A DNA stretch of 64,000 bases. It comes from Camelus dromedarius. Taxonomy: Eukaryota. Location: positions 121,148,001 through 121,212,000 of the forward strand of contig NC_087437.1 of the NCBI RefSeq assembly GCF_036321535.1, written 5' to 3'. The notes beneath the pieces are model-generated. The model had not been told where the DNA came from, ran no database searches, and worked only from the letters and a program-made list of their open reading frames with translations. Both the position numbers and the translations under genes were made by a program. This document shows positions 5,791 to 44,214 of this stretch, in pieces; the first letter of the stretch is position 1; the number at the start of each line of letters is the position of its first letter.

Positions 5791-6852
5791 TCACAATTTT
5801 TAAAAATTATGTCAGCTAAGGGGCTTCTAAGGGTGAGGCCCTCATGGCCAGCGGCACTGGAAGTTATCCGAGTTGTAAATCTTGGATGATCTTACAGGTG
5901 AGATATTTATGTTTTAATTTGGGAAACTATTTATTGAGATCAAGTAGTTTTTCATATGATTATTGGAAATTTGAATATTTTAAATTTTGTTTGATTCTTT
6001 TATATCTTTATTGTTCTAGTTTAAGGTCTTTAAAATTTTCATATTAACCTTTTATCTATTGCACAAATTGCAAACATTTCCTGGCAGTTCAATATCCTCA
6101 ATTTGTCCATGAAAAAGATTCCCTGTGGGTTTTGATGGAAATTACATCAATGATGGGTCTTCCTTCAGCTTCATACCACCCGGACCCTCTCTTGTCTCCG
6201 GATGAAAGCACGACACAGGACCTGCCTCTCTCAGGTAACTGACCATGGCTCTGCGGAACATGGCTTAGGACTCAAATTTCAGTCCCTGAATCTGGTTCTC
6301 CTAATGAACCAGGGAGCTCTGACTTCGATAGAAAGTTCCATTTCCTTCTTCTGGAAGGGAAGGTCCTCTCCTGTCCTCAGGCCTCATCCGTCTTGCTCAC
6401 ATGGGTACCACGGAAGCTCACAGAGCCCACCAGGAGGGGTCTGTCCTCACGTTGCCTTTTCCCCTAATAGACACACCATCGATTTCTCCCCAATCGCAGG
6501 CCAGGCCAGCTGTCCCAGGTGAGGCTCTAAACACAAAATGCGGACCGACAGAGCACATGTCACCATGGGCCCGGAGCTGTCTCCCCAGCTCTGGGGAGGG
6601 CCCCTGGCACATGACCCACCAGGGGAAGCCATGGGGTCAGCCACGGGGAGGTTGCACGTTTCTGCCAGGTGTCTGGCGGGGCCAGACTCAGGCCAGGATT
6701 CGGTGCCCTGCCAGCATCATCAGTGTCAGGAGTTGAGCAAGGACATCTCATGACAGTGGAACCAGCTGAATGAGAGTCCTCACCAGGAAACACATCAAAC
6801 AGGAAGTGACGGCATGGGGCCTCCTTCAGGGACAACATACACACCTGGAGGG

Positions 6853-6859
6853 TATAAAA
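6853..6859 (+). promoter_or_regulatory. TATA box of KRTAP10 gene A
   Basis: TATAAAA 113 bp before the ATG, followed by a (CA)n-rich 5' UTR typical of these genes. Confidence 0.85.
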
Positions 6860-6873
6860 GCTGACAGCAGGAG

Positions 6874-6965: not shown

Positions 6966-7556
6966 ATGGCCGCGCCTGCCCTGTCCGTCTGTTCCAGCAA
7001 CCTGAGCTACGGCAGCCGGGTCTGCCTGCCCGGTCCCTGTGACTCCTGCACCGGCTCCTCCTGGCAGGTGGACGACTGCCCAGAGAGCTGCTGCGAGCCC
7101 CCCTGCTGCGCCCCGGCCCCCTGCCTGAGCCTCCTCTGCACCCCAGCGAGCTGTGAGCCCTGTCCTTGCCCATCTGCCTGCACCAGCTCCTGCACGGCCT
7201 TGTGCTGCCCGCAGTCTAGCTGCCAGCCCTCCTGCTGCACCTCCTCCCTCTGCCAGCAGGACTGCTGTGCGCCCCTCTGCTGCAGGCCCGTGTGCTGCAC
7301 ACCTGTCTGCTGCAGGCCCGTGTGCTGCAGGCCTGTCTGCTGCAGGCCCGTGTGCTGTGAGCCCACCCCCTGCCCCTCGTCCTGCTGCAGACCCTCCTCC
7401 TGTGTGTCCCTGCTCTGCCGCCCCGTGTGCAGACCCACCTGCTGTGCCCCCGCCCCCTCCTGCCAGCCCAGCTGCTGCCACCCAGCCTCCTGCGTGTCCC
7501 TGCTCTGCCGCCCCAGGTGCTCCCGCTCAGCCTGCTGTGTCCCCGATTCAGCCTAG
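6966..7556 (+). CDS. KRTAP10: Keratin-associated protein, KRTAP10 family (gene A), 196 aa, single exon
   Basis: MAAPALSVCSSNLSYGSRVCLPGPCDSCTGSSWQVDDCPESCCEPPCC is a KRTAP10-type N-terminus, followed by CCRPV/CCTPV pentamers. Kozak accATGg, TATA at 6853, AATAAA at 7850. Member number cannot be assigned. Confidence 0.95.
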   Translation: MAAPALSVCSSNLSYGSRVCLPGPCDSCTGSSWQVDDCPESCCEPPCCAPAPCLSLLCTPASCEPCPCPSACTSSCTALCCPQSSCQPSCCTSSLCQQDCCAPLCCRPVCCTPVCCRPVCCRPVCCRPVCCEPTPCPSSCCRPSSCVSLLCRPVCRPTCCAPAPSCQPSCCHPASCVSLLCRPRCSRSACCVPDSA

Positions 7557-12820: not shown

Positions 12821-12944
12821 AAAAAGAATATGCCATTGTCAAGCAGAGTAGTTCTCAGAAATGATAGTTCTCAGAAATGATATAATTAACAATGCTAGTA
12901 GGTGGAAACAGAAAAGTCATTGAGAGTTAGAACTCTCAACACAC

Positions 12945-13510
12945 ACACACGTACACACATATACACACATACATGCACACGCATGCACACACATGTACAC
13001 ATACACACATACACTTGTACAGACACATGTACACATGCATATACACATATCCACCTACATACAGATATACACGTATACACATACACACATACATGTACAC
13101 ACATGTACACATGGACACGCATACACACGTGCATGTGTACACACAGANNNNNNNNNNNNNNNNNNNNNNNNNNNNNNNNNNNNNNNNNNNNNNNNNNNNN
13201 NNNNNNNNNNNNNNNNNNNNNNNNNNNNNNNNNNNNNNNNNNNNNNNNNNNNNNNNNNNNNNNNNNNNNNNNNNNNNNNNNNNNNNACGTATACATGCAC
13301 ACACATACGTATATGCATGTACACACATACACGTGTATACACACGTACACATATATGTACATACACCTGGATACATGTGTACACACATACACAGATACAT
13401 TCACATAAGGCATATACGCATATACATACCCATACACACATGTACACACATGCATGCACACATATATACATACACACATACACATGTACACCCACGTACA
13501 TACACAAAGA
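12945..13510. repeat. Long imperfect (CA/TA/CG)n alternating purine-pyrimidine tract, with an internal N-run (13148-13286)
   Basis: acacacacgtacacacatatacacacatacatgcacac… continues for about 570 bp. Confidence 0.95.
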
Positions 13511-14779
13511 CACGCATGAGCTGCCAAAGGCACCGCCATCACCTTCAGGACCCGGACAACAGGGCCTGTCCCACCGGTCCCGGCTGGGGCTCTACTGCAT
13601 CCCCGTCGTGGCGTGGCAGGGAAGCAGAAGGACAGCACAGCCGAGGGGCCGGGGGCAGCGCGCTGTCAGCCACACTGTCTGCTGGGCCCTCATTCCCTCC
13701 CAGCACCTATTCCATCTGCCCGGCCGGCACCAGAGGACACTGCCCTTCTGCTCACACTCAAATGCCCAGAGATTCCTTTTTTTGTATGTTTTTAAAAGTC
13801 ATTTGGTCATTTGACCTTCCACCGACCCGCCAGCCCCGACCACAGGCTCCCAGCCCCAGCCCAGGGCTGGGAAGAGCTGAGGTGAGAGCAGTGACTGCTG
13901 AGAGACGCTCTGAGCTGGGACGCAGACAGCTCACAGGCTAAGGAGGAGGCCGCTGCCGAACAGGGCGTGAGCCGTGAGTGAGGAAGAGCCCTGACACCTG
14001 CTAGATCAGGCTGGACCCAGCACAGTCCTGGGAAGAGCGGAGAACATCTTTACATCTGCCGTGGCTTGTCCCAGACCCAGTGCCACCCCCATCCTTCCCA
14101 CTCACAAAACCCAAGGCTTCCCGGGAGCAGGCATGGGGGAGGTTGGGAAGGGGTGCGGGGTGCCATGAGCAGAGCCCTTCGCGGCCGGGCGCTCAGTCTC
14201 CCCCGCCACCACCGTCCCTTTCATAGCTTGCTGCCCTCCGAACCCGATTTTTGCATCTGTACAAGGGGGTCCCAAAGGGGCGCCTCGCACAGGGGCTGAC
14301 CTCAGGAAGCACTCAGGTGTGACTGTGCATGTCGGAAAGGTCAAGTGCCATGCCTCATGCAGACCAGAGACGTTCTTAGTGTCCCGATCATTCCCCTAAA
14401 GCAGCGCTGACTTCCTCAGCTCTGGGACATGGATGAAGCGCACAGTTCTCTCACCACCCCTAGAAGAGCCACCGAGAGGACGTGTAAAAGTTATAAGAAA
14501 AACTAAACAAAGTAGTACGTAAACAAGAAGGAGGCCCAGTAGGACCCTGCATGTGTTCATCAAAGAGAAACAGGTATGTGTGTAAACTGGAACAAGATCT
14601 CCAATGCACAAGAATAAAACAGCTTAGTCTAAAACCAGACAGGTGACATCAAGGAGCTGGCCTTATCTGGTGTCCAAGCAAGAGACTGCTGGAGGAGCGG
14701 TGCAAAGCTTGTGAAAACGCACACTGACGGCCCCAGCGGTGACAGAGGACGTATCCCATTCACATCACAAGACAAAGTC

Positions 14780-16934: not shown

Positions 16935-17570
16935 ATGGCCGCGCCCGCCCTGTCCACCTGCTCCGGCGACCTGAGCTACGGCAGCCGGGTCTGCCTGGCC
17001 GGTCCCTGTGACTCCTGCACCGGCTCCTCCTGGCAGGTGGACGACTGCCCAGAGAGCTGCTGCGAGCCCCCCTGCTGCGCCCCGACCCCCTGCCTGAGCC
17101 TCCTCTGCGCCCCAGCGAGCTGTGAGCCCTGCCCCTGCCCATCTGCCTGCACCAGCTCCTGCACGGCCTTGTGCTGCCCGCAGTCTAGCTGCCAGCCCCC
17201 CTGCTGCACCTCCTCTCCCTGCCAGCAGGACTGCTGTGCGCCCCTCTACTGCAGGCCCGTGTGCTGCACGCCCGTGTGCTGCACACCTGTCTCCTGCAGG
17301 CCCGTGTGCTGCACACCTGTCTCCTGCAGGCCTGTGTGCTGCAGGCCCGTCTGCTGCAGGCCCGTGTGCTGTGAGCCCACCCTCTGCCACTCGTCCTGCT
17401 GCAGACCCTCCTCCTGTGTGTCCCTGCTCTGCCGCCCTGTGTGCAGACCCGCCTGCTGTGCCCCCGCCCCCTCCTGCCAGCCCAGCTGCTGCCGCCCGGC
17501 CTCATGCGTGTCCCTGCTCTGCCGCCCCAGGTGCTCCCGCTTGGCCTGGTGTGTCCCCGACTCGGCCTAG
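16935..17570 (+). CDS. KRTAP10: KRTAP10-family protein (gene B), 211 aa
   Basis: The true start is caccATGgcc at 16935 (homologous to gene A), not the track's 16542, which lies upstream of the TATA. Eight xCxPV-type pentamers. The nearest downstream AATAAA seen is at 18776. Confidence 0.93.
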   Translation: MAAPALSTCSGDLSYGSRVCLAGPCDSCTGSSWQVDDCPESCCEPPCCAPTPCLSLLCAPASCEPCPCPSACTSSCTALCCPQSSCQPPCCTSSPCQQDCCAPLYCRPVCCTPVCCTPVSCRPVCCTPVSCRPVCCRPVCCRPVCCEPTLCHSSCCRPSSCVSLLCRPVCRPACCAPAPSCQPSCCRPASCVSLLCRPRCSRLAWCVPDSA

Positions 17571-27371: not shown

Positions 27372-27631
27372 TCAGCAGCAGGAAGGGACACCACAGGGGA
27401 TGGGTCTGCAGACCAGGGCGGGGCAGGAGGGCGGGCAGCACCCGGAGGACTGGCGGGAGGGGGCCACACACACAGGGGCTTGCAGCTCACGGGCAGGCGT
27501 GTGGTCAGCTTGCAGCTCACAGGCACACACACGACAGGCCTGCTGCTCAGTGACACATAGCAAGTCTCCCGGCAGGGGCTGGGCGCACGGCAGGCCGGCC
27601 GGCAGCCCTCAGAGCAGCTAGTGTGGCACCT
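27372..27631 (-). pseudogene. KRTAP12: KRTAP12-family unprocessed pseudogene
   Basis: Start codon ATG>AGG (27631-27629, cacc-AGG-TGC-CAC-ACT). N-terminus CHTSCSEGCRPAC…PVSCK and C-terminus PVCVAPS.QSSGCCPPSCPALVCRP…SCC* are in different frames (1-bp deletion near 27475). TATAAA is degraded to CGTAAA (27705-27700). Confidence 0.88.
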
Positions 27632-29051
27632 GGTGAGGCGCTGAGGTGGGGTCAGGACTGAGTACAGGGCTGGTCTGGAGGCTCCTCCCCTGGGTGACAT
27701 TTACGCCCAGGCCATGGCATCCTGGCCACAAGGCATGCGAGTGCCCTCCTCCTGGCCGCCTGCTGTTTTTCCTCCTCGTCCCTCTCCACAGTCTCTTCCT
27801 GGAGTTCCCGGTGGAAGTGACCCAGTTCAGGAAGCTCCTTCTCAGCGGGAGGTACCCAGTGACACAGTGGTCCTGTGACTTCTGTAATTGGAGCCTGGGT
27901 TGGATAGGGAAGGGCCATCATGTGGGGACAGAAGTCTCACATCATATTCTCAGGGTCCTCCCCAGTTGTAAAGACCCTGTGTCTGTCCGCACAAGCACAG
28001 TGTCCCCCACTTTGATTTGGAAACTCAGTGATCCAGAAGGTTCTTCCACAGGGCTGGGCTCCTCACTGGGAGCTGCAGCCACACTACTGCCATGATCACA
28101 GCGACGGGGTTCCAGCTTCGAGCCGGGGCTGAGTTAAGTGTTTCACGTGGACCCCCTCGTAACTGATTGATGACCAGTCCTGCCACCGCCTGGGGGCGGC
28201 GGGAGCCCCGTGTGCACAGGCGGTCCCTCAGGGCGATTCAGAAGGAGCCCATGACGGGTGCACAGTCTCAGCGCTGAGACGGAGACACTTGAAGGTGTCA
28301 GCCCCCTGGGTCCCCAGTCCTCACATTGTGCTGCGTGCGCTGGGGCCCTGGGCGTGTGCTCTGAGATTCCTGCATCTGCCAATTGGAATTTTTTTTTAAA
28401 AAGTCAAATTTGGGAATTTTGTCTGCTATTTCTTCCCAGTTTTCTTATAGGTCAGTGTCATTCTCCTCTCCTCCCCGGGCAGAAATCACTCGCACGTTAG
28501 CCTCTCTGATGTTGTCTCACAGGCCTCCCCGTCTTTCTTAGCTCCTTGTCCCCCTTCTTCAGGTTGGATGATTTCCACTGACGTGTCCTCAGGTCCACCG
28601 AGCCTTCCCTCTATCAGCCCAGGGTGGTGACGCCTGCTCCTCGGTTCCCACGGTCGGAATCCTCCACCGGCCCCCGCACCCTGTCAGCCCGAGCTGTGGG
28701 ATTCCCCGCTGCCCCTGGAACTGCCCGTTTCTGCAGCCGTGTCCTCACAGCCCCCTGGCTGCCTCTGCCTGGAGCGCCGCCCCGACCCCTTCTCTGGACG
28801 CAGAGCCAGCTCAGCGCCACCTCCCCGCTGAGGCCCCCACACCACCCACCAGCTCCCCACTTCTCTCCATCTGCTGAGCCTGCTGTCCTTTCCGGGTCTC
28901 AGCCCCTCTGGAATCATCTCATGCATGAATGTTTCATGCACTCATTTGCTCACTGCCCTGGAAGGCTCAGGTGGCGGGGGCATCTCCCTCGCCAGCACGT
29001 AGTGTAATTTGTTGCATGAACGAATCAGCTCTTATACTGATTACTATGAAG

Positions 29052-29648: not shown

Positions 29649-29969
29649 ATGTGCCACACCAGCTGCCCCTCCGGCTGCCCGGCTGCCTGCTACGTGCCCA
29701 GCTCCGGCCAGGCGTCCTGCTGCACGGCCAGGCCCTGCCAGGCGTCCTGCTATGTGCCCCTGACCTGTAAGCCAGCTGTGTGCGTGCCCGTGAGCTGCAA
29801 GCCCACCGTGGGTGTGGCCCCCTCCTGCCAGTCCTTTGTGCGTGTGCCCGTGAGCTACAAACAGGTTGTGTATGTGGCCCCCTCCTGCCAGTCCTCCGGG
29901 TGCTACCAGCCCCCCTGCCCCACCCTGGTCTGCAGACCCACCTCCTGTAGCACCCCCTCGTGCCTTTGA
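29649..29969 (+). CDS. KRTAP12: KRTAP12-family protein (gene D), 106 aa
   Basis: MCHTSCPSGC…VCVPVSCKP…APSCQSSGCYQPPCPTLVCRPTSC is a KRTAP12 signature. Kozak gccaccATG; AATAAA at 30225-30230. Confidence 0.93.
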   Translation: MCHTSCPSGCPAACYVPSSGQASCCTARPCQASCYVPLTCKPAVCVPVSCKPTVGVAPSCQSFVRVPVSYKQVVYVAPSCQSSGCYQPPCPTLVCRPTSCSTPSCL

Positions 29970-31975: not shown

Positions 31976-32679
31976 AAGTTCTCTCCTTGGAGGTGCGAAC
32001 AAAGCACAGCGCAGCGGCCCCTCGCAGAGCCTCCTCCTGGCGGCCCGGCTGGGGTGGGGGGCCTTGGTGAGTGGAGGGTCAGGAAGGTGTGCCCCCATGT
32101 CCACCCCTCGAGGCTCATGCTGTGGGTGGGGGAGGACTTCCCTCCCTCTGAGTGGCGGACGGGAAACAGGCCTGGGTCCCACCTGGTCCCTAAAGGATGA
32201 CTACACAGGGAGGGCCAGAAACACCCACACAAACCCACCACACTTACAAAGGGGAGGCTGGATGTCCCAGGAGAAGAGGCAGGAAGTCTGAGAAAGCCTC
32301 ACCCTCCAAGCCCCAGGCACACAGGGCCTGCCAAGGCTGGCCCTGGACCAGGACCAGAGAGCCCTCCTGGCTCCCGACTCCAGCCCGGCCAGCGCAGCTG
32401 CCTGAACTGTGTCAGTCTCCACTGGGGAAAGGCAGATACGTGTAGAGGTCCCTTCTGTGTGCCAGGCAAGCAGGGCCAGCTGAAAACATAGGGCAGAGCA
32501 AAACACTGTGTCCCCCAGCCCTTGTCCTAAGCACAAGACACTGGCAGCGCCCTGGAATCTGAAGATACTGGTATCCTGAAAGTCCCAAACTGAGGCCAAC
32601 ACCTGAGCAGGTTGATTCAAACCTCCCTCCCACACATTGATGCCTTACAGAAGAGACACGGCCATTCCCAGGAGGAAAC

Positions 32680-34610
32680 ACTTTATGTCCATTGAAATGA
32701 ACACATGATATCTGAAATTCAACAAAACTTAGAAGACATACAAAAAAAGCGGGGTAGTGGTGGTGGTAATAAATCCACTGTCAAGAGAGAAAGCAATCAA
32801 CACAACTAGACTCCAAGTGACCCAGAGGTTGGAGCTGTCGGGCTGGAATTTTAAAATAACTATGACTAATATGTTAAAGGATTGCATGTAAAACATAGAC
32901 TACACATATGAACAGATGGGAATTGCAGCAGAGACATGGAAACCATGAGAGAGAGTCACATGGAGAGTGCAGAATCAAATACAACATCAAAGGCGAATTC
33001 CTTCAGTGTGCTCTTCAGCAGACATGACACAGCCAAGTGTGCAATCACTGAGTTTGAAGACAGGGAAATAGAGCCCTATTAAAACACAGAAAGTACGATG
33101 GGTGGGGGGAGAACAGAACACCAAGACTCCAGGGCAATATCAAGTTATCACTGATGCACATAATTAGAGTCCTCGAGAGAGAGTAAGGCTCAGAAATTAC
33201 TTATCTGTAGAAGGGATATTTGAAGAAATAATATGAGAAATTTTCTAAAAATGATGAAAGACATCAGACCATGAATTCAAACATATCAGAGTACTTAAGG
33301 TAGGATAAATGTCCCCCTCCCCATAAAATGAACTGGAAACACCATATTAAAACTGTGGCTGTCAAAAACCAAAAGTAAAGGGGAAATCTTGACAGCATCC
33401 ACACGGAAAAGACATGCTATATACAGAACAAAGATAGGAATTATATCAGAGTTCTGATTAGAAATTATACAATCCAAAAGACAGTGGAATGATATCTTTA
33501 AAACACTAAAAGAAAAATCTGTCAGTCCTATGAAGCAGAGTATCTTTCAAAAATGAAAGTCAAATAAGCACTTTTTCAGATAAACAAAAAACGAGAGTGA
33601 TTAACGGAAGATATTCACTACAAGAAATATTAAGAGAAAATCTTCAAGCCAAGGACTATGATAGCGTGGAGAAACCTGGATCTACACAAGGAAAAGAATG
33701 GTTCTAGAAGTGATTTTAAAGAGGAGATAAATACAAAAAGGATTACAAGATAACTGACACTTAGAGCAAATATAGTAACAGTTCTCAGCATACATAAAAG
33801 TAAAATATGACAATCACACAGAGGACAGGGAAGGGAAGCAGAAGTGCACTGCTGTGAAGTCCTGATGCTACAGATGACACGGCGTGAGACTAGTTGGAGG
33901 TAGACTGTGTTACATTAAAGCTGTGTGTTATAAACTCTAGATCTATCAGCTTCCAAAAGATCAACAAGTAATGAGCCAAAAGTAGAGATGAAATGGAGTA
34001 AATAAAAATATCAAACCTAAAAAGAAGGAAAAGAGAAAAAGGAACAGATGGTTCTTTAATATAACTAGCAAGATGGTATTGTTACATTTAAATATATTAA
34101 CAATTATATTAAATGCGAAATATCTAAACATCAAAATCAAAAGACAGATTTTCAAATTGGATAAAAAAACAAGAGCCAACTATGAGCTACCTATCAGAAA
34201 TCCCACTTTAATTATAAAAATATAGACAGGTTAAAAGTAAACAAATGGAAAAATATACCACACAAACACTAATCAGATGAAGTTGGAATGTCTATATTAA
34301 TATCAATAAAGTATATTTCAGAGCAAGACATATTACCAGGGATAAAGAGAGAGATGATATAATAATAAAGGGGCTGACTCACCAGGAAAACTTAACAATT
34401 CTAAATGTGTAAGCACCTAACAAAAGTTTCAAACACATAAAACAAACAAAATGATAGAACTAAAGGGAGAAACAGACAAATCCACAATTATCGCCTGACT
34501 TCAGCTTCTCAGCAATCAAACAAGTAGACAGAAAGTCAGTAAGGACAGAAGAGCCTGAATATGCTGTTAACCTGCTCGACCAGCTGATATTTACAGAATT
34601 CTCTTGCAAT
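32680..34610 (+). mobile_element. Old L1 fragment (ORF1 + ORF2 endonuclease)
   Basis: gggaaatcttgacagca…gacagtggaatgatatctttaaaacact (ORF1). agagccaactatgagctacctatcagaaatcccacttta and cttaacaattctaaatgtgtaagcacctaac (endonuclease). Confidence 0.8.
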
Positions 34611-35899
34611 TCTTACCTCCACCTGTGCGCGTGTCTGTAACTGACGTCTGCCGAGACAACGGCGCACGTGTGCTCGGCGGGGACGCCTGCGGCACGTGTG
34701 TCCCAGTTCCCAGCTCACATACATGTCCGCAAAGCCCAGAAGCGTGGGGACCAGGACGTGTGGGGGTCGGTGAGGTCCAGGTGGGTGCAGGGGGGGCGTG
34801 TTCTGCCCTGACTGAGCGAGCCAGGGTGTGAGGGCCCCAGCACCTCCTTGGAACATAGGAAGGGAGTGACGGCATTGCAGACACCAGGAGCCCCGTCCAC
34901 TCCTTGTGCCGTGGCCCCCCGACCGGCCAACCACTTACGCAGAGAATGATGAGTCAGGATGGGGGAGGATGGGGCGGCCCTGGTCCTTCTCCTGGGCAAG
35001 TGGGAGGCAGTGTGCACACTGAGACGTGAACAGCTGACTGGGCACATTTTGTGGGGCGTTTTCACTGTCCTGGTGGAACTTGCTCCCAAGAGTCCAGCAT
35101 CTTGGACATGGGGACCCTTTGGAATCCACATTGTGCCAGTGTCCCCCTCCAGATGTCCTCGTCAGCCGCCATCTGGCCTGCATCCCAGCTCATGACCTCT
35201 CTCAGACTCAGATGCCTCAACTCTACCAAGGGGAGTAAGAATTGCTTCCTCAGAGATGTGAAGGGAAGGTTTCTGGAAATCGTGGGTGGAGAAGACCACG
35301 CAGGGCCTGGTGCGAGGGGGCTGGCAGGGACACGCGGGGCTGAATTCCGTCACTCTCAGTGGTGACCTGCTGGTCTGCTCTCCCCAGGGGCTGTGGGGCC
35401 CTGGGCCCCAGTCATCCTGGTGGGACAGTCCTGTCGTGGGCCAGCTCCGGGTGGTCCCCGCGGGTGGGAGTCTGGGCGCATCACGCCGGTGCCCTCCCCT
35501 CCTTTCCAATAGCAGGACCCCACGCCAGCCGGCAGGACGCCCAAACATCCCCACAGGAAGAAGCCCCAGGTGGGGCCCCGGGCCGGGGGCTGCCATGCAC
35601 AGACACTGGGGCATGCGAGGGTGGGCGCCCACCCGGGACACTCAGGGACTCGGTGGACAAGGGCACAGGACTCTGACTCCCTGGGGACCATCTGTCCACC
35701 CCCTGCAGTAGGACCCAGTGTCCAGCCCAGCAGAGCCCAGCCTGGTGTGGGCTGCGGCCGCTCCCGGCTCAGGGGCTGTGCTTCGTGTGCGGGGTCTCCT
35801 TGTGGGACCGGCTTCACGGGGCCCCCAAAACAGGAAGAGGAAAGTGCAACCAGCGCCAGCAGCACACAGTGGACCTGTTGCCGGGACACAGGGCCCGGG

Positions 35900-35906
35900 T
35901 AATAAA
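35900..35906 (+). promoter_or_regulatory. Variant TATA box (TAATAAA) in a KRTAP12-type promoter
   Basis: cccgggTAATAAAggctgcccggg aligns with cccgggTATAAAggccgcccggg of genes D and F. Confidence 0.65.
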
Positions 35907-35953
35907 GGCTGCCCGGGAAAGGAGCTGCCAGACCCGCCCAGCCCTACACCACC

Positions 35954-36262
35954 ATGTGCTGGACCATCGGCCCCGAGGGCTGCCAGCCGGGCTGCGCTGG
36001 TCGCCCAGGCTGCGTCCCCATCTGCTGCCCTCCCCTGTGCTGTGGGGTGGCCACCCCCAACGAGGCCACGCTGTGCTGTCCTCTGGGCTCCATGACCACC
36101 TCCTGCCACCCAGGCTGCGACCCTCAGTCCCTGTGCAGCCCCGCCTGCAGCCCCGCCTGCTGCACATCCCTGAGCTGCCAGCCCGAGGCCTGTGAGGCGG
36201 CCTCCTGCCCCACCTGCGTCTGCCTGCCCTCCTTCCTCTGCGCCATCCTCCCCTGCTGCTGA
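35954..36262 (+). CDS. Divergent Cys-rich keratin-associated-protein-like gene (gene E), 102 aa, 24 Cys
   Basis: Intact ORF MCWTIGPEGCQPGC…AILPCC*. Kozak caccaccATG, KRTAP12-homologous promoter and 5' UTR, AATAAA at 36437-36442. Lacks the KRTAP10 and KRTAP12 repeat motifs. Confidence 0.75.
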   Translation: MCWTIGPEGCQPGCAGRPGCVPICCPPLCCGVATPNEATLCCPLGSMTTSCHPGCDPQSLCSPACSPACCTSLSCQPEACEAASCPTCVCLPSFLCAILPCC

Positions 36263-37489
36263 AGCTGCGTCTCCCTGGTCACGGCAGCCGAGCCTTGCCA
36301 CGAAGGTCTCCACCCTCCTGCTCTGCCCTTCACGGGAGCGCGCCCCCAGGGCCCCACACTGATCTCTAGCTAGTCACCGAAGACGGAGCCCAGCTCCCAG
36401 AGGGAGCCTGAGCCAGGAACCCCGCAGAGGCTGGCTAATAAATGGGTCCATCTAACATCCCCTCCAAGGAAACCATCACTAGCACACGGCTGGGGACGGC
36501 GTCCCGGGAGGAGACCTGAGGGGCAGCGCAGTGAGGTCACAACTCGGTAGGTGTGCGGATAAACAGATACTAACCGAATAGATCAATGAGAAAGCTGACC
36601 AAGTAGTGGGGCTAGGAAAAACTCGGGGTAAAACGAGGGCCCTGGACAGACGTTGTGGGTCAGTGGACGACTTCTGCTTTCATTCACAGGGTAGGGGTGT
36701 GGCCAGCCCCTAAAACGTAGAGAGCAGAAAGGCTGAAAGTAAAAGGAGAGAAAAAAGCACGTCCAACCGAAGCCATCCGGTGCAATTATCTCAGCAGGCA
36801 AAGCGCACTTTACGGGAGAAACACTGCCCCGGATGGAGATGCACTCTGGCCCGTGGTAACACAGTTCAGTGCGCCAGAGACGCAACAGTATTCAACCTCG
36901 ATGCGCCACAAACGGTAGCCTCAAAATGGCAAAACCTGGTGCATTCCAAGGAGGAAAGATGAATCCTGCGTCACGGGAGAGACTGTGACACACTTTCCTC
37001 AGAGCAAGCTGACCAACAGCGTTAAAGGTCAATTTATTCAGAACCTGAGACTTTTCCAGTATTTTTCTTCACTTTAGACAAAGCTTGCTGAAATGAGACT
37101 TTGGCTAATTAATATTTAGGGAACATTTTGTCACAAAGAACTTCCAAATTTATGTGGAAACATCCATTTGTGGCCTAAAACTTGTGCTCGTGGTATGTGC
37201 ACATTTGAATCTTTACATCCGTTAAAGAAAAGTGTCAGCTCTGTTGCCCCAAAACAGCTCCCGTCACAAGGCGCTGCTCAGCTGTGACGCATCAGAACCT
37301 GACTTTACTGTCACCTTAACCCAGGGGACTGCCTTGCCCTTTTTGCTTTTTTCCACAGTATGACTTGTGGAAAGCACTTCTGCTGTTTTCCAAAGTTCTC
37401 GTATGAAAAGTGTCACGGAAAAGCGGTTAAAACCGTTTAACTGACACAACGCTGTAAACTGACTACACTTCAATTGAAAAAACATTCAG

Positions 37490-38050
37490 TACAGAAATAG
37501 CAGAATCGTGGGCAGAAATTAATGAAATGGGAAACACATCACCCAACAGAGCAAGGACGGTTCTCCGAGAAGACGGACCCTTGGCCTGTGGGATTGGCTG
37601 GTGGGGCAAAGGGGAAGGCGCCCCAAAGACTCCTGGGAAATGAGAAATTACAGCAGAGCCACAGACATAACAATTTTAAAAAATTATCAGTGACCATTAC
37701 AACTTTATCCCAATAAATTATCTAAAACACATAAAACTTACCAAAACAATTTTTTTAGAAATCTGAGGTGAGGAGGGTACTGCTCAGTGGCAGAGCGCAG
37801 GCTTAGCGTGCACAAGGTCCTGGGTTCCATCCCCAGTGCTTCCGCTACAATAAATTAAGTGAATAAACAGACAAATCTAATTGCCTCTCCCCCCAAAAAA
37901 CAAATGAAAAAAGAAATGTGATAACCTGTAACCACTAAAAATTTGAATCAAGAGTTAGAATCCACCAGCCAAGCTGATACCAGACCCAGACATTCAAGGA
38001 GTAAATAGCTCCAAACTGCTATAAACTCCTCCAGGGAATTCAAAACTAAG
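37490..38050 (+). mobile_element. Degenerate L1 ORF2 relic interrupted by a SINE
   Basis: aatagcagaatc…ttctccgagaagacggac…cccaataaattatctaaaac…agaaatgtgataacctg. Confidence 0.5.
37767..37911 (+). mobile_element. tRNA-derived SINE
   Basis: ggagggtactgctcagtggcagagcg…gtcctgggttccatcccc. TSD agaaatctga / agaaatgtga. Confidence 0.9.
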
Positions 38051-39881
38051 ATAGCTCCTGCCCGCCCTCCCTCCCTCCGAGAGCTGGACCCACTCGAGCG
38101 CCAAAACGAAGACAGCTGATAAAAGAAACGTGTGCAGGTGGCTCCACTTACAGAAGCTCAGAACCACTCAAATCATTGCTGCCGGAGGTCCGGGCAGCGG
38201 TCCCTCTGGAAGGTGGGGGCTGGGAGGGGGACTGGAGAGTCCAGGACCGGCCCTGGAGAGCTGGCCTGCCACGGCTCTGGCCCTGACTGGGATCTCAGGC
38301 TGTGGCGTGACATCTGGTCCCCTGCGGGCTGGAGGGGAGGGCGGGCCCGCTGGAGGCTCTCCGGGCTGGCCGGGGGTGGGGGTGGGGGCGATGGTCTCAT
38401 CCACAGGGCGGGGCTCTCTCTACTGCTGACAAAGTATATCTCAAGCCCCACCCATCTTGGGTCTTAGAAAAGCTCCAAGGAAAACTCATCACAAGAAAGC
38501 CCCAAAACAAAGAGTCTGGAGCCCATGGGTGCTTCTGAGGAGCGGGTGGGGAAGTCAGTTTCCTGGTCTCCGGCCGCTGCCTGTAGCTTCACCTGCAGGC
38601 TGGGCTCCCCCTGGGGCCTGAGGCGGGCTCCGTGCACACGGCTCCCTGCCCTGCGCTCCTGCACGCCGTCCTCCCCTCTGCCGGACAGACAGACGGAACG
38701 TGAGCGCTTTGCATGCCGCGGAGGTTGGCTTGCCCCACACAGAAAGGTCATGGATGCCAGCGGGTGGGGACGGGACAAGGACAGTCCACAGCCAGGCCCT
38801 CCCGCCCACAGTCCCCTCGGCACCCACACCCGGCCACCCACTGGGCAGATTTAAGCTGACACAGGCCCACAACAGGGCAGCCGGAGGGGCCCAGACCAAC
38901 GCACCGCGCACGGGAGGGAACAGCCGTAGCACAGAGTGAGAAGGGCGAGTCCCCCCGAAGGTCACAGTCAGGGTGATGTCCTATCACCATGCAAACTGCT
39001 GAATCCGAATTACACCTTTTGGGAACACAAAGAGACGTGACTCAACTCCGTTTTTTCAAAGGTGACAGACAGCGAGCACACGTTCCCAGCCTAAGTCACT
39101 GATGTTCTGCTGTCCACGTGAGGGTTATTATAGCACAATCAGCAATAATTGATCATCAGTTGATTGATTAAAAATGAGTCATACGTGGACCGGTGATGGA
39201 AGTGAGTCACGAGCTGAGGACCAGAGCTGCCCCAGTTCTGCAACCCTGATGCCCAAAGGAGCCAAAGCTGCCCCCCTGGGCTCAACTCTCCCTGACACAG
39301 GACACAGGACATCTTCCGACAAGATGGGGCAGCCCGCACTCACTCCAGGAGGCAGGACCCCACAGCTGAGGGGAAGATCAGCCACGGAAAGACGGCGAGT
39401 CCCTGCCCGCGCCACTTGCTGAGCACAGAAGGTATGACGTCCCGGGCCACTCCCTCCTCCCAAGACCGCCCTTCCCCCACCCCCCCACCATGAGCCACAG
39501 TGGAGCAGCAGGGATCACTGCAGAGGGGACCAGCCCCAAATCCTGGGTAACAGACTGGCCAGCCAGAAAACTGAGAGATGAAAGAAAGACAGGAAGAGAT
39601 TGCTGCCTCGGAAAAGCTCGATTTATTTGGCTCGTGAGGTGTGGCTTCCTGTCGGAGCCAGAGAAAGCTGCTGGGAACCAGGGCTTCCCAGAGGGGATGT
39701 ACAAGTTTACTGAAGGATCCAGATCATCTCAGCACATTTCCCTCCCCCGGAGGTCAGGGGGTTGGCAGAGCACGCTTTCCATCTGCCACGTGCAGAACCT
39801 GGAGGTCAGTCGAGGACTCGTGCCAGGAGGGACACAGGTGTGGCCCCATCTGCACTGGAGATGCTGGGAGGAGGCTCGCGG

Positions 39882-40109
39882 TCAAAGGTAGGAGGGGGTG
39901 CTACAGGAGGTGGGTCTGCAGACCAGGGTGGGGCAGGAGGGCTGGAAGCACCCGGAGGACAGGCAGGAGGGGGTCACACACACGACTGGCTTGTAGCTCA
40001 CGGGCACATGCACTGGCCTGTATCTCACGGGGACATATACAGCTGGCCTGTAGGTCACAGGCACGCAGCTGGACGCCTGGCAGCCGGAGGAGCAGCTGGT
40101 GTGGCACAT
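39882..40109 (-). CDS. KRTAP12: KRTAP12-family protein (gene F), 75 aa
   Basis: MCHTSCSSGCQASSCVPV…TPSCLSSGCFQPSCPTLVCRPTSCSTPSYL. TATAAA at 40184-40179; AATAAA at 39627-39622; inverted paralog of gene D. Confidence 0.88.
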   Translation of the reverse strand: MCHTSCSSGCQASSCVPVTYRPAVYVPVRYRPVHVPVSYKPVVCVTPSCLSSGCFQPSCPTLVCRPTSCSTPSYL

Positions 40110-41699: not shown

Positions 41700-43560
41700 C
41701 AAAGACCTGCTCCAACCACAGCCTCTGCTGCAGGGCCCAGGAACCTTCTGGTACAGACAGGAGTTGAACATGGAGATCAAAATAATACTGGGAAAACTCG
41801 ATGGAGTGACTGGTACCAGACCACTGAAGAAAACACATGAGACATCCACTTCTGGGCAGTGGTCAAGACACAGCAGTGACTGTGACTCCTGAGAGGGAGG
41901 AAACCCGCAAGACGGCCTCCACACGTGCCCAGCTCCCAGCCTGGGGTCAGCCTCCCAGGTGCAGTGCAGTGAGCTGGGGTTTGGGCAGGACATGAGGCCG
42001 CACTCTGCTGAAGAGGAAAAGACCCGTGGTTGGCACTGGAAGCACCTAGAATCTGAGGAGTCGAGCATCAGAAAGGAGGGGCTGCGTGCAAGTCCCCTGT
42101 AAATCTGCCGGAGGGAGGGGCTGTCTATACGTAAGGCAAGGCCACTGGAGGCTGCCAAGAAACTGCTACAGGACTGAGAGTGGAGCTCCTCTGGCATCCC
42201 ACTGACACCCCATCTAATCAGCACCCAAGGAATAGGGGTCCCACTCTAGATCTGCCCTAACGAAGCCCAGCCAATCCATGACAGGATTTCCAGGGAAGAC
42301 AGCTTGGAAGTTGAATCTCACCAACACATAGAGCTTTCCACAGGTCTGCTCCAACAAAGTGTAAAAGCAATCCTGCACAAACAAGTTCAAGGTGGTCAGT
42401 TAGTAATTGACTGTCTGCTAGAACAAAAGTGAACAATCAGTAAAACAAGAGAATGCAGGCTCTCCAAATGTATTATCATAATTGCTAATATACAATCAAA
42501 AATCACTAGACATAAAAAGATGCAGGAAAATGTAATCCGCAGTTAAAGAACAAAACAATAGTAATGCAGCCTCAGCTGGTCCAAATATTGGTTTTGCAAG
42601 CCATGGCATTAGAGCAGCTATTTGTTTAAAGACTCAAAGGAAGATATGCTCAAAGAAGTAAAGGAAAATGTTATGTTCATGAGTGAATAGGTTCTCATGA
42701 GGGAATCTCAGCAGAGGAATGGAAACATTAAAAACGGGAATTCTAGAACCAAAACCACAATAGCTGAAATAAAATATCCACTTGGTGGACCTAACAGCAG
42801 ACTGAAGACAGAAACAGAAAGAGTGAGTGAAAGCAAAGATGCAGCAGGAGAAATTATCCAGTCTGACGGGAAAGAATGCACAAAAGTGACAAGACCTGCG
42901 ACCTGCGACAGCATCAAACAGTCTGACACACACGTAAGCTCAGCCTCAGAATGATATCAGCAAGAATGATATCGAAGCACAGAAGTGTTTTGAAGAAATA
43001 ATAGACAATTTTCCCAAACTTGATTTAAAGCAACTTACAGATCCAAGAATCTTAGTAAACCCAAAGCAGGATAAATACAAAGAACACCACACCTGGCCAC
43101 TGAATAGTGATAAAAACCAAAAGTTAAAAAAGAAAAAAGAAAAGAAAAGAAAGAAAAATAAAAAACTTCAAAGCAGTGAGAGAAAAAACACTCCACAAAC
43201 AAGAGAAAAGACAACAACAGCTGACTTTTTGTCAGAAACAATGGGAGACAGAGGACAATGGAATGATATCAGTAAAAAGCTGAAGACAAAAATTGCCCAT
43301 CAGGAATTCTGTATCTAGAAAGAAAACCAATAAAATGCACCTAAACTATCCAAAAACAGAGAATTCTATATCCAGCACTCCACCTTCAAACCTGAGGGCG
43401 AAGTGAAACAGTTTCAGAGAAACAAAAGTGAGAGAACGCCTCAGCAGCGGACTTGCCCTCAAGAAATACCAAAGGAGGTCCTTTAGGCGGAGCAGAAATG
43501 GGCCCAGGGAGGGTCCGCGGGAAGGGCCGGGGCCCAGGGACGCTGGGAGGCACGTACGGA
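41700..43560 (+). mobile_element. Old L1 5' region + ORF1 relic
   Basis: aatagctgaaataaaatatccacttggtggacctaacagcagact, gaaataatagacaattttcccaaacttg, gacaatggaatgatatc, caggaattctgtatctag (ORF1 motifs). Confidence 0.75.
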
Positions 43561-44214
43561 CAGGAGCCTCGCTCTCCCTCTCCCAGTGACTGCCAGGAAC
43601 GAGGTCGCATACGGACATGCGGTCACACTGGGCTGCCCTAAACTCTCTCTGCTTTCCGCGTGATTTTGACTTGTGGTAAGAGCCAGAGGAGGCGCTGAGC
43701 CCACGGGTCGTGGCCTGTGCAGAGGCTCCAGGTCATTCGCCGTGTGGTCTCAGATCAGCTTGGTCCCTCAGGTTTCCAAGTTCTGACCATGTTTTAGCCC
43801 CTGAGCCTTGGGGTGACATCATTACCGTGGTGTCCGACTCGTCACGGGGCTCCCTAGGGGAGGCCCCTCCACCCACAGCAGCAGTCACGGGGGCCTCGCA
43901 CAGGCACGAGGGCCTCAGGGACACAGCCTCGGAGGAGGCTGCAGCACTGCCCTGAGAGATGGCCACACCCTGTGAGCGGCACCCACCGGAGAATGACGTG
44001 TGGCTGGCGTGTAGAGAGAACACAGGGCAGGCACACATGAGGAGCGCGTAATCCACGCTCCTGCCAGCTGCCCAGCCCGGGGAGGGGCACCGGGGCGTCT
44101 GACGCTGGCTGCAAGGCCGGGCTGATCAGACCCTCGGGTGGGGAAAGGAATCTGGAGGGTGGCTTAGCCCCCCCCCCCACTCAGGTCCCCCGGGATCCAC
44201 CCAGTGCTGCCTGA

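Follow-up and report, generated by a model that had tools for sequence, protein, structure and literature searches.

Which kind of KAP gene lies between two KRTAP12 genes of this cluster, and is it still a gene? The window (the whole stretch of 64,000 nucleotides analysed here) contains four KRTAP10-type and three KRTAP12-type genes besides the one under study, gene E, which stands between the KRTAP12-type genes D and F. A sequence-only reading had seen in gene E a KAP gene that looks intact and joins a KRTAP12 promoter to a different body, and had taken it for a KAP lineage in its own right that human may have lost. In fibre-producing livestock, KAP genes from the KRTAP10/12 cluster have so far remained uncharacterised, and according to a 2021 review nearly all known sheep and goat KRTAPs belong to two other large clusters (PMC8657448). 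We find it reasonably likely that gene E is a diverged, still-open copy of the KRTAP12-4 sublineage, located in the KRTAP10/12 cluster inside TSPEAR.

Reading frame and signals of gene E

Gene E (35954-36262, + strand) is an uninterrupted single-exon frame of 102 codons, running from an ATG in a good Kozak context (caccaccATG, with A at -3) to a TGA stop. Of the 102 residues of the encoded protein, 24 are Cys (23.5 mol%) and 16 are Pro; the sequence ends in ...LPCC-stop. This Cys content places it in the high-sulphur class, defined by at most 30 mol% Cys (PMC3269608); the mean for the KRTAP12 family is 22.5% (PMC4180150). The frame with its 24 Cys and CC C-terminus, the Kozak context, and an AATAAA 175 nt past the stop had all been claimed from the letters and are borne out. 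The same holds for the motifs CCPPLCC, CSPACSPACC and CPTCVC, all three found in the protein, and for the absence of repeats of two kinds, VCVPVSCKP as in D and F and CCRPV as in KRTAP10.

The coding sequence can be divided into several parts. Codons 16-35 (GRPGCVPICCPPLCCGVATP; 35999-36058, +) have a specific counterpart in the primate KRTAP12-4-position gene (SPCCVPSTCYPPQGCG). They are followed by the most diverged, middle portion of the gene, codons 36-72 (36059-36169, +), and by a KRTAP12-type C-terminus, codons 73-102 (SCQPEACEAASCPTCVCLPSFLCAILPCC; 36170-36259, +), recognised by alignment with KRTAP12 genes. Tandem Repeats Finder detected an in-frame 12-nt tandem duplication (TGCAGCCCCGCC x2.2; 36134-36160, +), which encodes CSPACSPAC. 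Upstream, a KRTAP12-type proximal promoter and a short 5'UTR (35825-35953, +), delimited by homology to KRTAP12 promoters, include a CCAGAC element and a TATA-like TAATAAA (35900-35906); the 5'UTR is 22-28 nt shorter than that of the family. Downstream, a 3'UTR is predicted at 36263-36460 (+), with its AATAAA at 36437-36442. The distance from the stop to this signal is 255 nt in D and F, and the 3'UTRs of these two genes cannot be aligned with that of gene E.

An open frame of 102 codons is by itself not significant: 30% of random sequences with the composition of gene E are open over this length, and five further ORFs, of 100-223 aa, overlap the gene. The number of in-frame Cys codons is far beyond chance, with 24 in the frame against 5 and 0 in the remaining two phases; random sequences had 3.3 on average and at most 12 in 20,000. 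GC3 is 0.89, versus 0.70 in the KRTAP12 pseudogene C of the window. The sequence is real and stable, since six DNA runs of the species carry 100% of the sampled gene E words and NCBI nr already contains the exact 102-aa protein, as a single-member cluster.

Kinship with the KRTAP12 family and probable place in its 12-4 sublineage

The promoter of gene E has homologues in front of KRTAP12 genes elsewhere in the window and in pig, mustelids, sea lion and monkeys, and the promoter and 5'UTR identities with D and F quoted in the sequence-only reading were correct on alignment. In a promoter tree, the genes at the 12-3 and 12-2 positions are separated from a group made of the 12-4-position genes and gene E (support 97/96), with gene E on a long branch. 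Among the 13 promoters compared, that of gene E deviates most: it carries 9 private changes at columns invariant elsewhere, against 7 for pseudogene C and 0-3 for the others. These changes affect the proximal GAGGAAG motif and the TATA box, into which one nucleotide is inserted, and include the loss of 22-28 nt from the 5'UTR.

At the N-terminus, MCWTIGPEGCQ in gene E keeps 6 of the 11 residues of the family sequence MCHTSCSSGCQ, with loss of Cys6. KRTAP12 likeness had been thought to stop after the first ~14 codons. It was also found over the last ~30, which follow the pattern SCQ..C..SCPT.VC.P..C..P.CC-stop and align with KRTAP12 C-termini: SCQPEACEAASCPTCVCLPSFLCAILPCC-stop is colinear with KRTAP12 SCQSSGCCQPSCPTLVCRP.SCSTPSCC-stop, with one gap, and gene E ends exactly at the CC-stop position of the family. 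At the DNA level, comparing codons 73-102 with pseudogene C and with the genes at the KRTAP12-4 position gave z=3.3-4.6. Protein shuffle tests gave z=8.3 against Aotus 12-1 and z=7.3 against the KRTAP12-4-position ORF of Cercocebus. Atlas features placed gene E nearest to KRTAP12-2-like and 12-1-like clusters (0.94), and the Atlas clusters of its protein coincide with those of the KRTAP12-4-position protein.

Compared with KRTAP12-1, -2 and -3 (D, F, pig KRTAP12-1-like and Aotus KRTAP12-1), gene E shares the cluster, the promoter architecture, an N-terminal MC.T....GCQP.C, the high-sulphur class and a C-terminal SCQ...C...SCPT.VC.P..C..P.CC-stop. It differs from them by the lack of VCVPVSC(K/R)P repeats, by a CDS identity of 52-59%, and by a promoter that falls into the opposite group at the 97/96 split. 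No internal repeat of the VCVPVSC(K/R)P type was found in gene E. The monkey KRTAP12-4-position gene itself has a single such unit (VSVSCKPVLCVAS), so that these repeats are not a KRTAP12-wide feature. Overall, gene E very likely belongs to the KRTAP12 family.

Within the family, its closest relative is an uncalled ORF of 110 aa in Cercocebus atys (L007:6473-6805, - strand), at the KRTAP12-4 position. The human gene order is KRTAP10-11, 12-4, 12-3, 12-2, 12-1, 10-12 (PMC4962380). The monkey ORF adjoins KRTAP12-3, as checked by synteny, on the side where this order puts KRTAP12-4. Over the whole CDS, gene E and this ORF share 68.4% nucleotide identity (51.0+-3.4 with shuffled codons), and BLASTP gives 42% aa identity over 100 aa (E=5e-8). 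The mustelid 12-4-position gene comes second, at 64.4%, and all remaining KRTAP12 genes fall at 52-60%. Recognised orthologues at the KRTAP12-4 position are 70-71% identical to each other in nucleotides, a value near that of the gene E-monkey pair. The dS between gene E and the monkey gene is 0.55; it is 0.48 between gene D and 12-3, and 0.44-0.49 for other primate-to-laurasiatherian pairs. The divergence of gene E from the monkey and mustelid 12-4-position genes is of the orthologue level.

A specific local signal comes from codons 16-35, which in a codon-shuffle test against the Cercocebus 12-4-position gene scored 46 (z=7.5, reached in 0/300 shuffles), against z<2.5 for all other KRTAP12 and KRTAP10 genes. 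The match is in frame and lies at an equal distance from the ATG in both genes. Taken alone, codons 36-72 matched no gene significantly at the DNA level (z<=2.9), and they resemble the KRTAP12-4-type gene solely within the full-length alignment (LC.PL....T.C.P.C). Other shared traits are the single exon, the KRTAP12 promoter with CCAGAC, the start MC.T....GC, the segment G.P.CVP..C.PP..CG (codons 16-35 of gene E), few or no VCVPVSCKP repeats, a C-terminal part SC.P..C.A..CP, and a similar size and Cys content (102 aa with 23.5% Cys in gene E, 110 aa with 25.5% in the Cercocebus ORF). On the other hand, gene E is located elsewhere and in the opposite orientation, its flanks and 3'UTR cannot be aligned, Cys6 and several more Cys are replaced, the promoter is deviant, and the CSPACSPAC duplication is peculiar to it; its amino-acid sequence also evolves faster, with a dN of 0.47 where the monkey and mustelid genes have 0.31 between them. 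Membership of the 12-4 sublineage is, all considered, quite likely. The sequence-only reading was right that the KAP gene looks intact and has a KRTAP12-type promoter, and what it called a "different body" turns out to be a diverged body of the KRTAP12-4 type. Given this body and the placement in the promoter tree, the lineage of gene E was not lost in primates.

Two other origins have to be weighed against this assignment. That gene E represents a KAP family or lineage of its own, distinct from KRTAP10 and KRTAP12 and lost in human, is very improbable and already refuted in large part, its best CDS match being the Cercocebus KRTAP12-4-position ORF. In its favour, the protein had no match at E<=10 in Pfam, including Keratin_B2_2 (PF13885), and matched itself alone, with no annotated relative, when 5.8 billion clusters were searched by word index and 1.84 billion representatives with HMMER; the missing stand-alone match of codons 36-72 and the long branch in the promoter tree point the same way. 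A Pfam match is, however, a weak membership criterion, since 5 of 10 named KRTAP12 matches carry no Pfam domain either. Moreover, promoter, N-terminus and C-terminus are all of the KRTAP12 type, the full-length alignment with the primate KRTAP12-4-position gene shows a divergence expected of orthologues, and the two proteins fall into the same Atlas clusters.

It is also unlikely, though less so, that gene E is a mosaic, in which past gene conversion or unequal exchange has combined a 3' half derived from KRTAP10 with a promoter, a 5' end and an extreme 3' end from KRTAP12. Over codons 61-102, gene E shows in-frame similarity to the 'CRPVCC...CCEASPC' region in pig and sheep KRTAP10 (z=6.2 and 5.9), hhalign pairs residues 51-92 with the C-terminal part of KRTAP10 at 48% identity, and high gene conversion rates have been reported for high-cysteine KRTAPs (PMC4180150). 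But identity with KRTAP10 genes lies at only ~70-75%, over ~120 nt of low-complexity sequence, the KRTAP10 genes of the window itself score lower (z 1.5-2.2), and codons 61-102 align equally well with the KRTAP12-4-type gene, colinear over the full length to the common stop. The two families are related, and their common motifs may be ancestral. In hhalign, the KRTAP12 and KRTAP10 profiles both gave weak, low-complexity-driven matches to gene E, which do not discriminate between them. With the four KRTAP10 copies of the window, gene E shares the cluster, a Cys-Pro-rich composition and the weak similarity over codons 61-102. It lacks their N-terminal domain MAAS..SVCSSDLSYGSRVC (test pattern MAAS.LS.CS.DLSYGSRVCLPG.C) and their CC(R/T/K)PV repeat array, has a different promoter and is half as large.

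Three further identities were rejected. A frameshift origin of the body was dismissed, as the other two frames give no KRTAP12-like peptide. Gene E is not a recent duplicate of D or F: the match to these genes is confined to the promoter and ~45 nt at the start, flanks and 3'UTR differ, and CDS identity is 52%. KRTAP28, a small high-sulphur KAP of sheep and goat that is likewise outside the human set (PMC6523819, PMC7074440), is unrelated; it belongs to another cluster, near the KRTAP25 region (21q22.1 homologue), and the KRTAP28 of Khan et al., with 38% Cys and 31% Gly, is very unlike gene E in composition.

Position of gene E in the cluster

Synteny links the cluster in the window to loci of pig, Cercocebus and mustelids at which named KRTAP12 genes occur together with TSPEAR models; in pig, monkey and mole-rat, the orthologous loci fall within TSPEAR (EPTP) gene models. 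In the window, the place that corresponds to KRTAP12-4 (beside KRTAP12-3 in head-to-head orientation, towards KRTAP10-11) holds pseudogene C (27372-27640, -), inactivated by ATG -> AGG plus a frameshift. By synteny, it corresponds in position to primate KRTAP12-4 and to a remnant on the (-) strand in pig. Gene D (29649-29969, +; 106 aa, 18 Cys) occupies the KRTAP12-3 position, as judged from synteny and a CDS identity of 79-82% with its monkey, pig and mustelid counterparts. Gene F (39882-40109, -; 75 aa, 10 Cys, ending in SYL) has the KRTAP12-2 position by synteny, and is 87% identical to gene D.

Gene E is found beyond D, on the + strand. A conserved intergenic block (32157-34557) is common to Cercocebus (L007 11103-14401), and pig (L001 11316-12831) matches its first part alone (window 32002-32958). 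After this block comes the non-aligned stretch 34557-39510, in which gene E lies, and no alignment partners were found for the flanks of the gene. Neither pig nor Cercocebus showed a counterpart at the syntenic place, and in mustelids, sea lion, Aotus and Fukomys none was detected up to 10 kb to either side of KRTAP12 genes. Tblastn and blastn revealed no remnant of it in the monkey syntenic gap (L007 14301-17900), and no further KAP remnants surround it between 30.3 and 39.5 kb. At the sheep and muskox loci examined, KRTAP10 genes alone were seen.

Constraint, decay and possible function

The dN/dS between gene E and the monkey gene is 0.86 (pN/pS CI 0.64-1.28), and a three-taxon split assigns ~1.0 to the gene E branch. 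Part of what the sequence-only reading had named as speaking against its proposal was found: a dN/dS near 1, and no intact orthologue where synteny would place one in pig and monkey. Other traits of the sequence speak for constraint. The alignment of the gene E and Cercocebus CDS, made on DNA and hence not codon-aware, contains six gaps, all of them multiples of 3. At sites conserved between monkey and mustelids, gene E kept 14 of 18 Cys, versus 11 of 28 other residues (p=0.016). Since its split from the 12-4-position genes, gene E has kept its frame through six in-frame indels and has retained Cys preferentially. In substitution-only simulations of neutral decay, with d=0.25-0.5, Cys content fell to 10-16%, and the probability of being both open and at least as Cys-rich as gene E (>=23.5%) was at most 0.0006.

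It is quite possible, if short of probable, that gene E is a former KRTAP12-4-type gene, long selected and now silent or nearly so, which drifts and whose frame is open merely because stop codons are rare in GC-rich sequence. The pairwise dN/dS of ~0.9, with ~1 on its own branch, agrees with such a relic, as do a promoter that deviates as much as that of pseudogene C, the 30% of random sequences of the same composition that stay open across 102 codons, and the 17-31% of KRTAP12-type ancestors that remain open under neutral substitution at d=0.25-0.5. Pig and monkey lack gene E at the syntenic place, and no annotated orthologue was found in the 5.8 billion clusters and 1.84 billion representatives; both observations agree with a relic too. 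Against it stand a Cys content of 23.5%, which greatly exceeds the neutral expectation, the preferential retention of ancestral Cys, the in-frame nature of every indel, the GC3 of 0.89, the preserved ATG, Kozak context, TATA-like box and AATAAA, and a sequence that is the same in six DNA runs. These retained features oppose only a gene dead for long, not a recently silenced one.

Gene E, which we propose to be a strongly diverged, still-open copy from the KRTAP12-4 sublineage within the high-sulphur KRTAP12 family, placed between D and F, could on its sequence features equally well be functional today or not. The more specific idea of a functional, lineage-restricted and relocated KRTAP12-4 duplicate, rapidly evolved and possibly under diversifying selection, is doubtful. 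KAPs in general cross-link keratin intermediate filaments through disulphide bonds (PMC3269608). If transcribed in the hair follicle, the gene E product would presumably act like other high-sulphur KAPs, as a disordered matrix protein and disulphide cross-linker of keratin intermediate filaments. KAP10 and KAP12 were reportedly found by Rogers et al. in 2004 to be expressed in the fibre cuticle, which would make the cuticle the likely site for gene E as well. A functional gene E would be the sole KRTAP12-type gene of the genome to keep the full high-sulphur character: with C dead, and D and F Cys-depleted (17% and 13%), it could supply the cuticle or matrix with a species-specific component that bears on fibre properties. 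If expressed, it would offer an additional fast-evolving matrix gene for fibre-trait association and proteomics, and would illustrate how a KAP can alter most of its sequence yet retain frame and Cys content. If silent, it would exemplify the ordinary birth-and-death turnover of the KRTAP12 family. Expressed or silent, it is no new kind of gene.

In the RNA runs of one study, into which DNA carry-over is possible, the word share was 0.29-0.69 for gene E and 0.53-0.56 for KRTAP10. In DNA runs, it was 1.00 for gene E and 0.56-0.61 for KRTAP10.

Identity of the gene E body

The basic features of gene E, a KAP-type ORF at 35954-36262 (+), are as the sequence-only reading had described them: 102 codons from an ATG in the context caccaccATG to LPCC and TGA, 24 Cys (with 16 Pro), promoter and 5'UTR strings shared with the KRTAP12-type genes D (29649-29969, +) and F (39882-40109, -), and an AATAAA at 36437-36442, beginning 175 nt 3' of the stop. 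A TATA-like TAATAAA (35900-35906, +) lies 54 nt 5' of the ATG. The open frame alone means little, since 30% of random sequences of E's composition are open across 102 codons and the region has five further, overlapping ORFs of 100-223 aa. The in-frame Cys signal is real: the reading frame has 24 Cys codons and the remaining two phases have 5 and 0, whereas random expectation is 3.3 (maximum 12 in 20,000 trials).

E had been read as having a different body, KRTAP12-like in its first ~14 codons only, and as a lineage possibly lost in human. Its best match is an uncalled 110-aa ORF of the monkey Cercocebus atys (locus L007, 6473-6805, -), which adjoins KRTAP12-3 at the KRTAP12-4 position and aligns over the whole CDS (42% of 100 aa identical at E=5e-8 in BLASTP with compositional adjustment). 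At the DNA level, 203 of 297 positions (68.4%) are identical in the MAFFT alignment, versus 51.0+-3.4% for codon-shuffled controls; the second-best match is the mustelid KRTAP12-4-position gene (64.4%), and other tested KRTAP12 genes reach 52-60%. Recognised KRTAP12-4-position genes are themselves merely 70-71% identical between orders. Codons 16-35 of E, RPGCVPICCPPLCCG, match SPCCVPSTCYPPQGCG of the Cercocebus ORF in frame and at equal distance from the ATG (score 46, z=7.5, 0/300 shuffles), and match no other compared gene (every z<2.5). The dS between E and the monkey gene is 0.55, to be compared with 0.48 for D versus KRTAP12-3 and 0.49 for mustelid versus monkey. A tree built on promoter, 5'UTR and first 15 codons separates, with support 97/96, D, F and the other 12-3/12-2-position genes from the 12-4-position genes plus E, whose branch is long (0.53). 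In Atlas features, E and the monkey ORF fall in the same KRTAP12 clusters. From these comparisons the body is a diverged KRTAP12-4-type one, and E belongs, on sequence criteria, to the KRTAP12-4 sublineage, as a divergent member that has changed its place; the Cercocebus ORF shows that this lineage persists in primates.

The KRTAP12 likeness also extends beyond the start, as the last ~30 codons align colinearly with the C-terminal ends of KRTAP12 genes and stop at the same position. The 3' half may nevertheless be of old mosaic origin, because codons 36-72 gave no significant stand-alone match to the compared genes and codons 61-102 are also similar to a KRTAP10 segment (z about 6). Two other origins were rejected. 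Against recent copying from D or F, nothing is alignable beyond the promoter and first ~45 nt, and CDS identity is 52%; against a frameshifted KRTAP12, the remaining frames of E are unlike KRTAP12.

E is already known as a predicted protein, since NCBI nr contains the identical 102 aa as a cluster of one member. Besides itself, no significant match was found among 5.8 billion clusters and 1.84 billion representatives, and these protein collections contain no annotated orthologue. The exact D and F proteins as read here are absent from the protein collection.

Position in the KRTAP10/KRTAP12 cluster

The window is a KRTAP10/KRTAP12 cluster, with four KRTAP10-type genes (at 6966, 16935, 22402 and 45926, +), genes D and F, and a KRTAP12 pseudogene, C (27372-27640, -), absent from the sequence-only reading, whose ATG has become AGG and which has at least one frameshift. 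The orthologous loci of pig, Cercocebus and Fukomys sit within an opposite-strand TSPEAR (EPTP-domain) gene model. By synteny, C corresponds to the monkey gene adjoining KRTAP12-3 and to a pig (-) remnant, D to monkey KRTAP12-3, pig KRTAP12-1-like and a mustelid (+) gene, and F to the monkey gene on the far side of KRTAP12-3. Given the human order KRTAP10-11, 12-4, 12-3, 12-2, 12-1, 10-12 (PMC4962380), C thus occupies the place of KRTAP12-4 and F that of KRTAP12-2.

A conserved intergenic block (32157-34557) is followed by the stretch containing E (34557-39510), which lacks a counterpart at the syntenic place both in monkey (L007 14401-17848) and in pig; in the latter, KRTAP10 genes come next after the block. 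For the orthologue search proposed in the sequence-only reading, the pig and monkey loci gave none at the syntenic site, and the monkey locus a homologous ORF at the KRTAP12-4 position. E was the only further KAP-like sequence found in 30.3-39.5 kb. Just 5' of it, ~1.4 kb (34500-35900) is GC-rich (60-68%), without KAP-like coding signal or homologue in the other loci; its several long ORFs look driven by composition. The pig locus, as read, has neither an E nor an F counterpart; its conserved block comes after the KRTAP12-3-type gene.

Past selection and present function

Selection on frame and Cys clearly acted through most of E's history. Although the aligner took no account of codons, each of the six gaps between E and the monkey gene has a length divisible by 3, versus gaps of 3, 8, 10, 13 and 18 between E and pseudogene C. 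In simulated neutral decay (substitution-only, KRTAP12-type ancestors, 0.25-0.5 changes per site), Cys falls to 10-16%, with P<=0.0006 for a frame both open and at >=23.5% Cys. E keeps 14 of 18 Cys common to the monkey and mustelid genes versus 11 of 28 other conserved residues (Fisher p=0.016, somewhat inflated by the aligner favouring C-C pairs). Its GC3 is 0.89, as in intact KAP genes, versus 0.70 in C, and it retains start, Kozak context, TATA-like box and AATAAA.

Against present function, dN/dS between E and the monkey gene, a check the sequence-only reading had called for, is 0.86 (pN/pS CI 0.64-1.28), and a three-taxon decomposition assigns ~1.06 to the branch of E, versus 0.73 for mustelid and 0.49 for monkey. 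Counted over columns of promoter and 5'UTR that are otherwise invariant among the 13 genes, E has 9 private deviations, C 7 and the rest 0-3; those of E strike the proximal GAGGAAG and GA(T/C)GCC motifs. The 5'UTR has a 22-28 nt deletion, the TATA box a 1-nt insertion, and Cys6, conserved N-terminally in the family, is absent. The empty syntenic site in pig and monkey also counts against function. E may have been silenced recently, and that it would be functional today appears an evenly balanced proposition. On the side of function, all sampled words of the E stretch are present in six DNA runs (1.00, versus 0.56-0.61 for a KRTAP10 gene). The RNA runs of one study contain 0.29-0.69 of E words, versus 0.53-0.56 for the KRTAP10 gene, a pattern consistent with low-level transcription in hair-bearing material and likewise with DNA carry-over.

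If expressed, the E protein would behave as a high-sulphur KAP, a class with <=30 mol% Cys (PMC3269608). Such a protein would be part of the disulphide-cross-linked matrix surrounding keratin intermediate filaments. Human KAP10 and KAP12 are reportedly expressed in the fibre cuticle. Among the KRTAP12-type genes in the window, E alone keeps full Cys content (17% in D and 13% in F; C is dead), so that follicle expression, if shown, would matter somewhat more. E exemplifies the birth-and-death and fast sequence turnover for which high-cysteine KRTAPs are known (PMC4180150).

Neighbouring genes and other loci

Pseudogene C has a degraded TATA box (ggcgtaaatg) and a canonical VCVPVSCK-type body despite its primate KRTAP12-4 position. 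D and F have open frames with many Cys replaced by Y, G or R; F, at 75 aa, lacks repeats and ends in SYL instead of SCC. Their 87% mutual identity suggests a putative inverted duplication or gene conversion. Window 42818-43994 aligns reversed to the monkey KRTAP12-4/12-3 intergenic region (L007 7940-9133), which suggests that an inverted duplication may have created F plus its upstream region.

The Cercocebus KRTAP12-4-position ORF (L007 6467-6805, -), uncalled in the assembly's annotation, has a TGA two codons ahead of the family's usual CC-stop (...ACC TGA TGC TGA). In pig, 6700-6860 (+) of locus L001 is a KRTAP10 C-terminal fragment, its 5' side truncated by an apparent SINE insertion. In the sea lion Zalophus (L009 10001-10501, +), the annotated product is 94 aa versus a continuous ORF of 166 aa, and the gene model apparently treats part of the CQTSCC repeat array as intron. 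In the window, a TG/TA-rich simple-sequence tract broken by an N run (12895-13540) yields spurious Cys/Val-rich ORFs on the - strand. Unlike its three paralogues, the KRTAP10-type copy at 16935-17570 (+) has several Cys replaced (PLYCRP, PVSCRP, LAWCVP).
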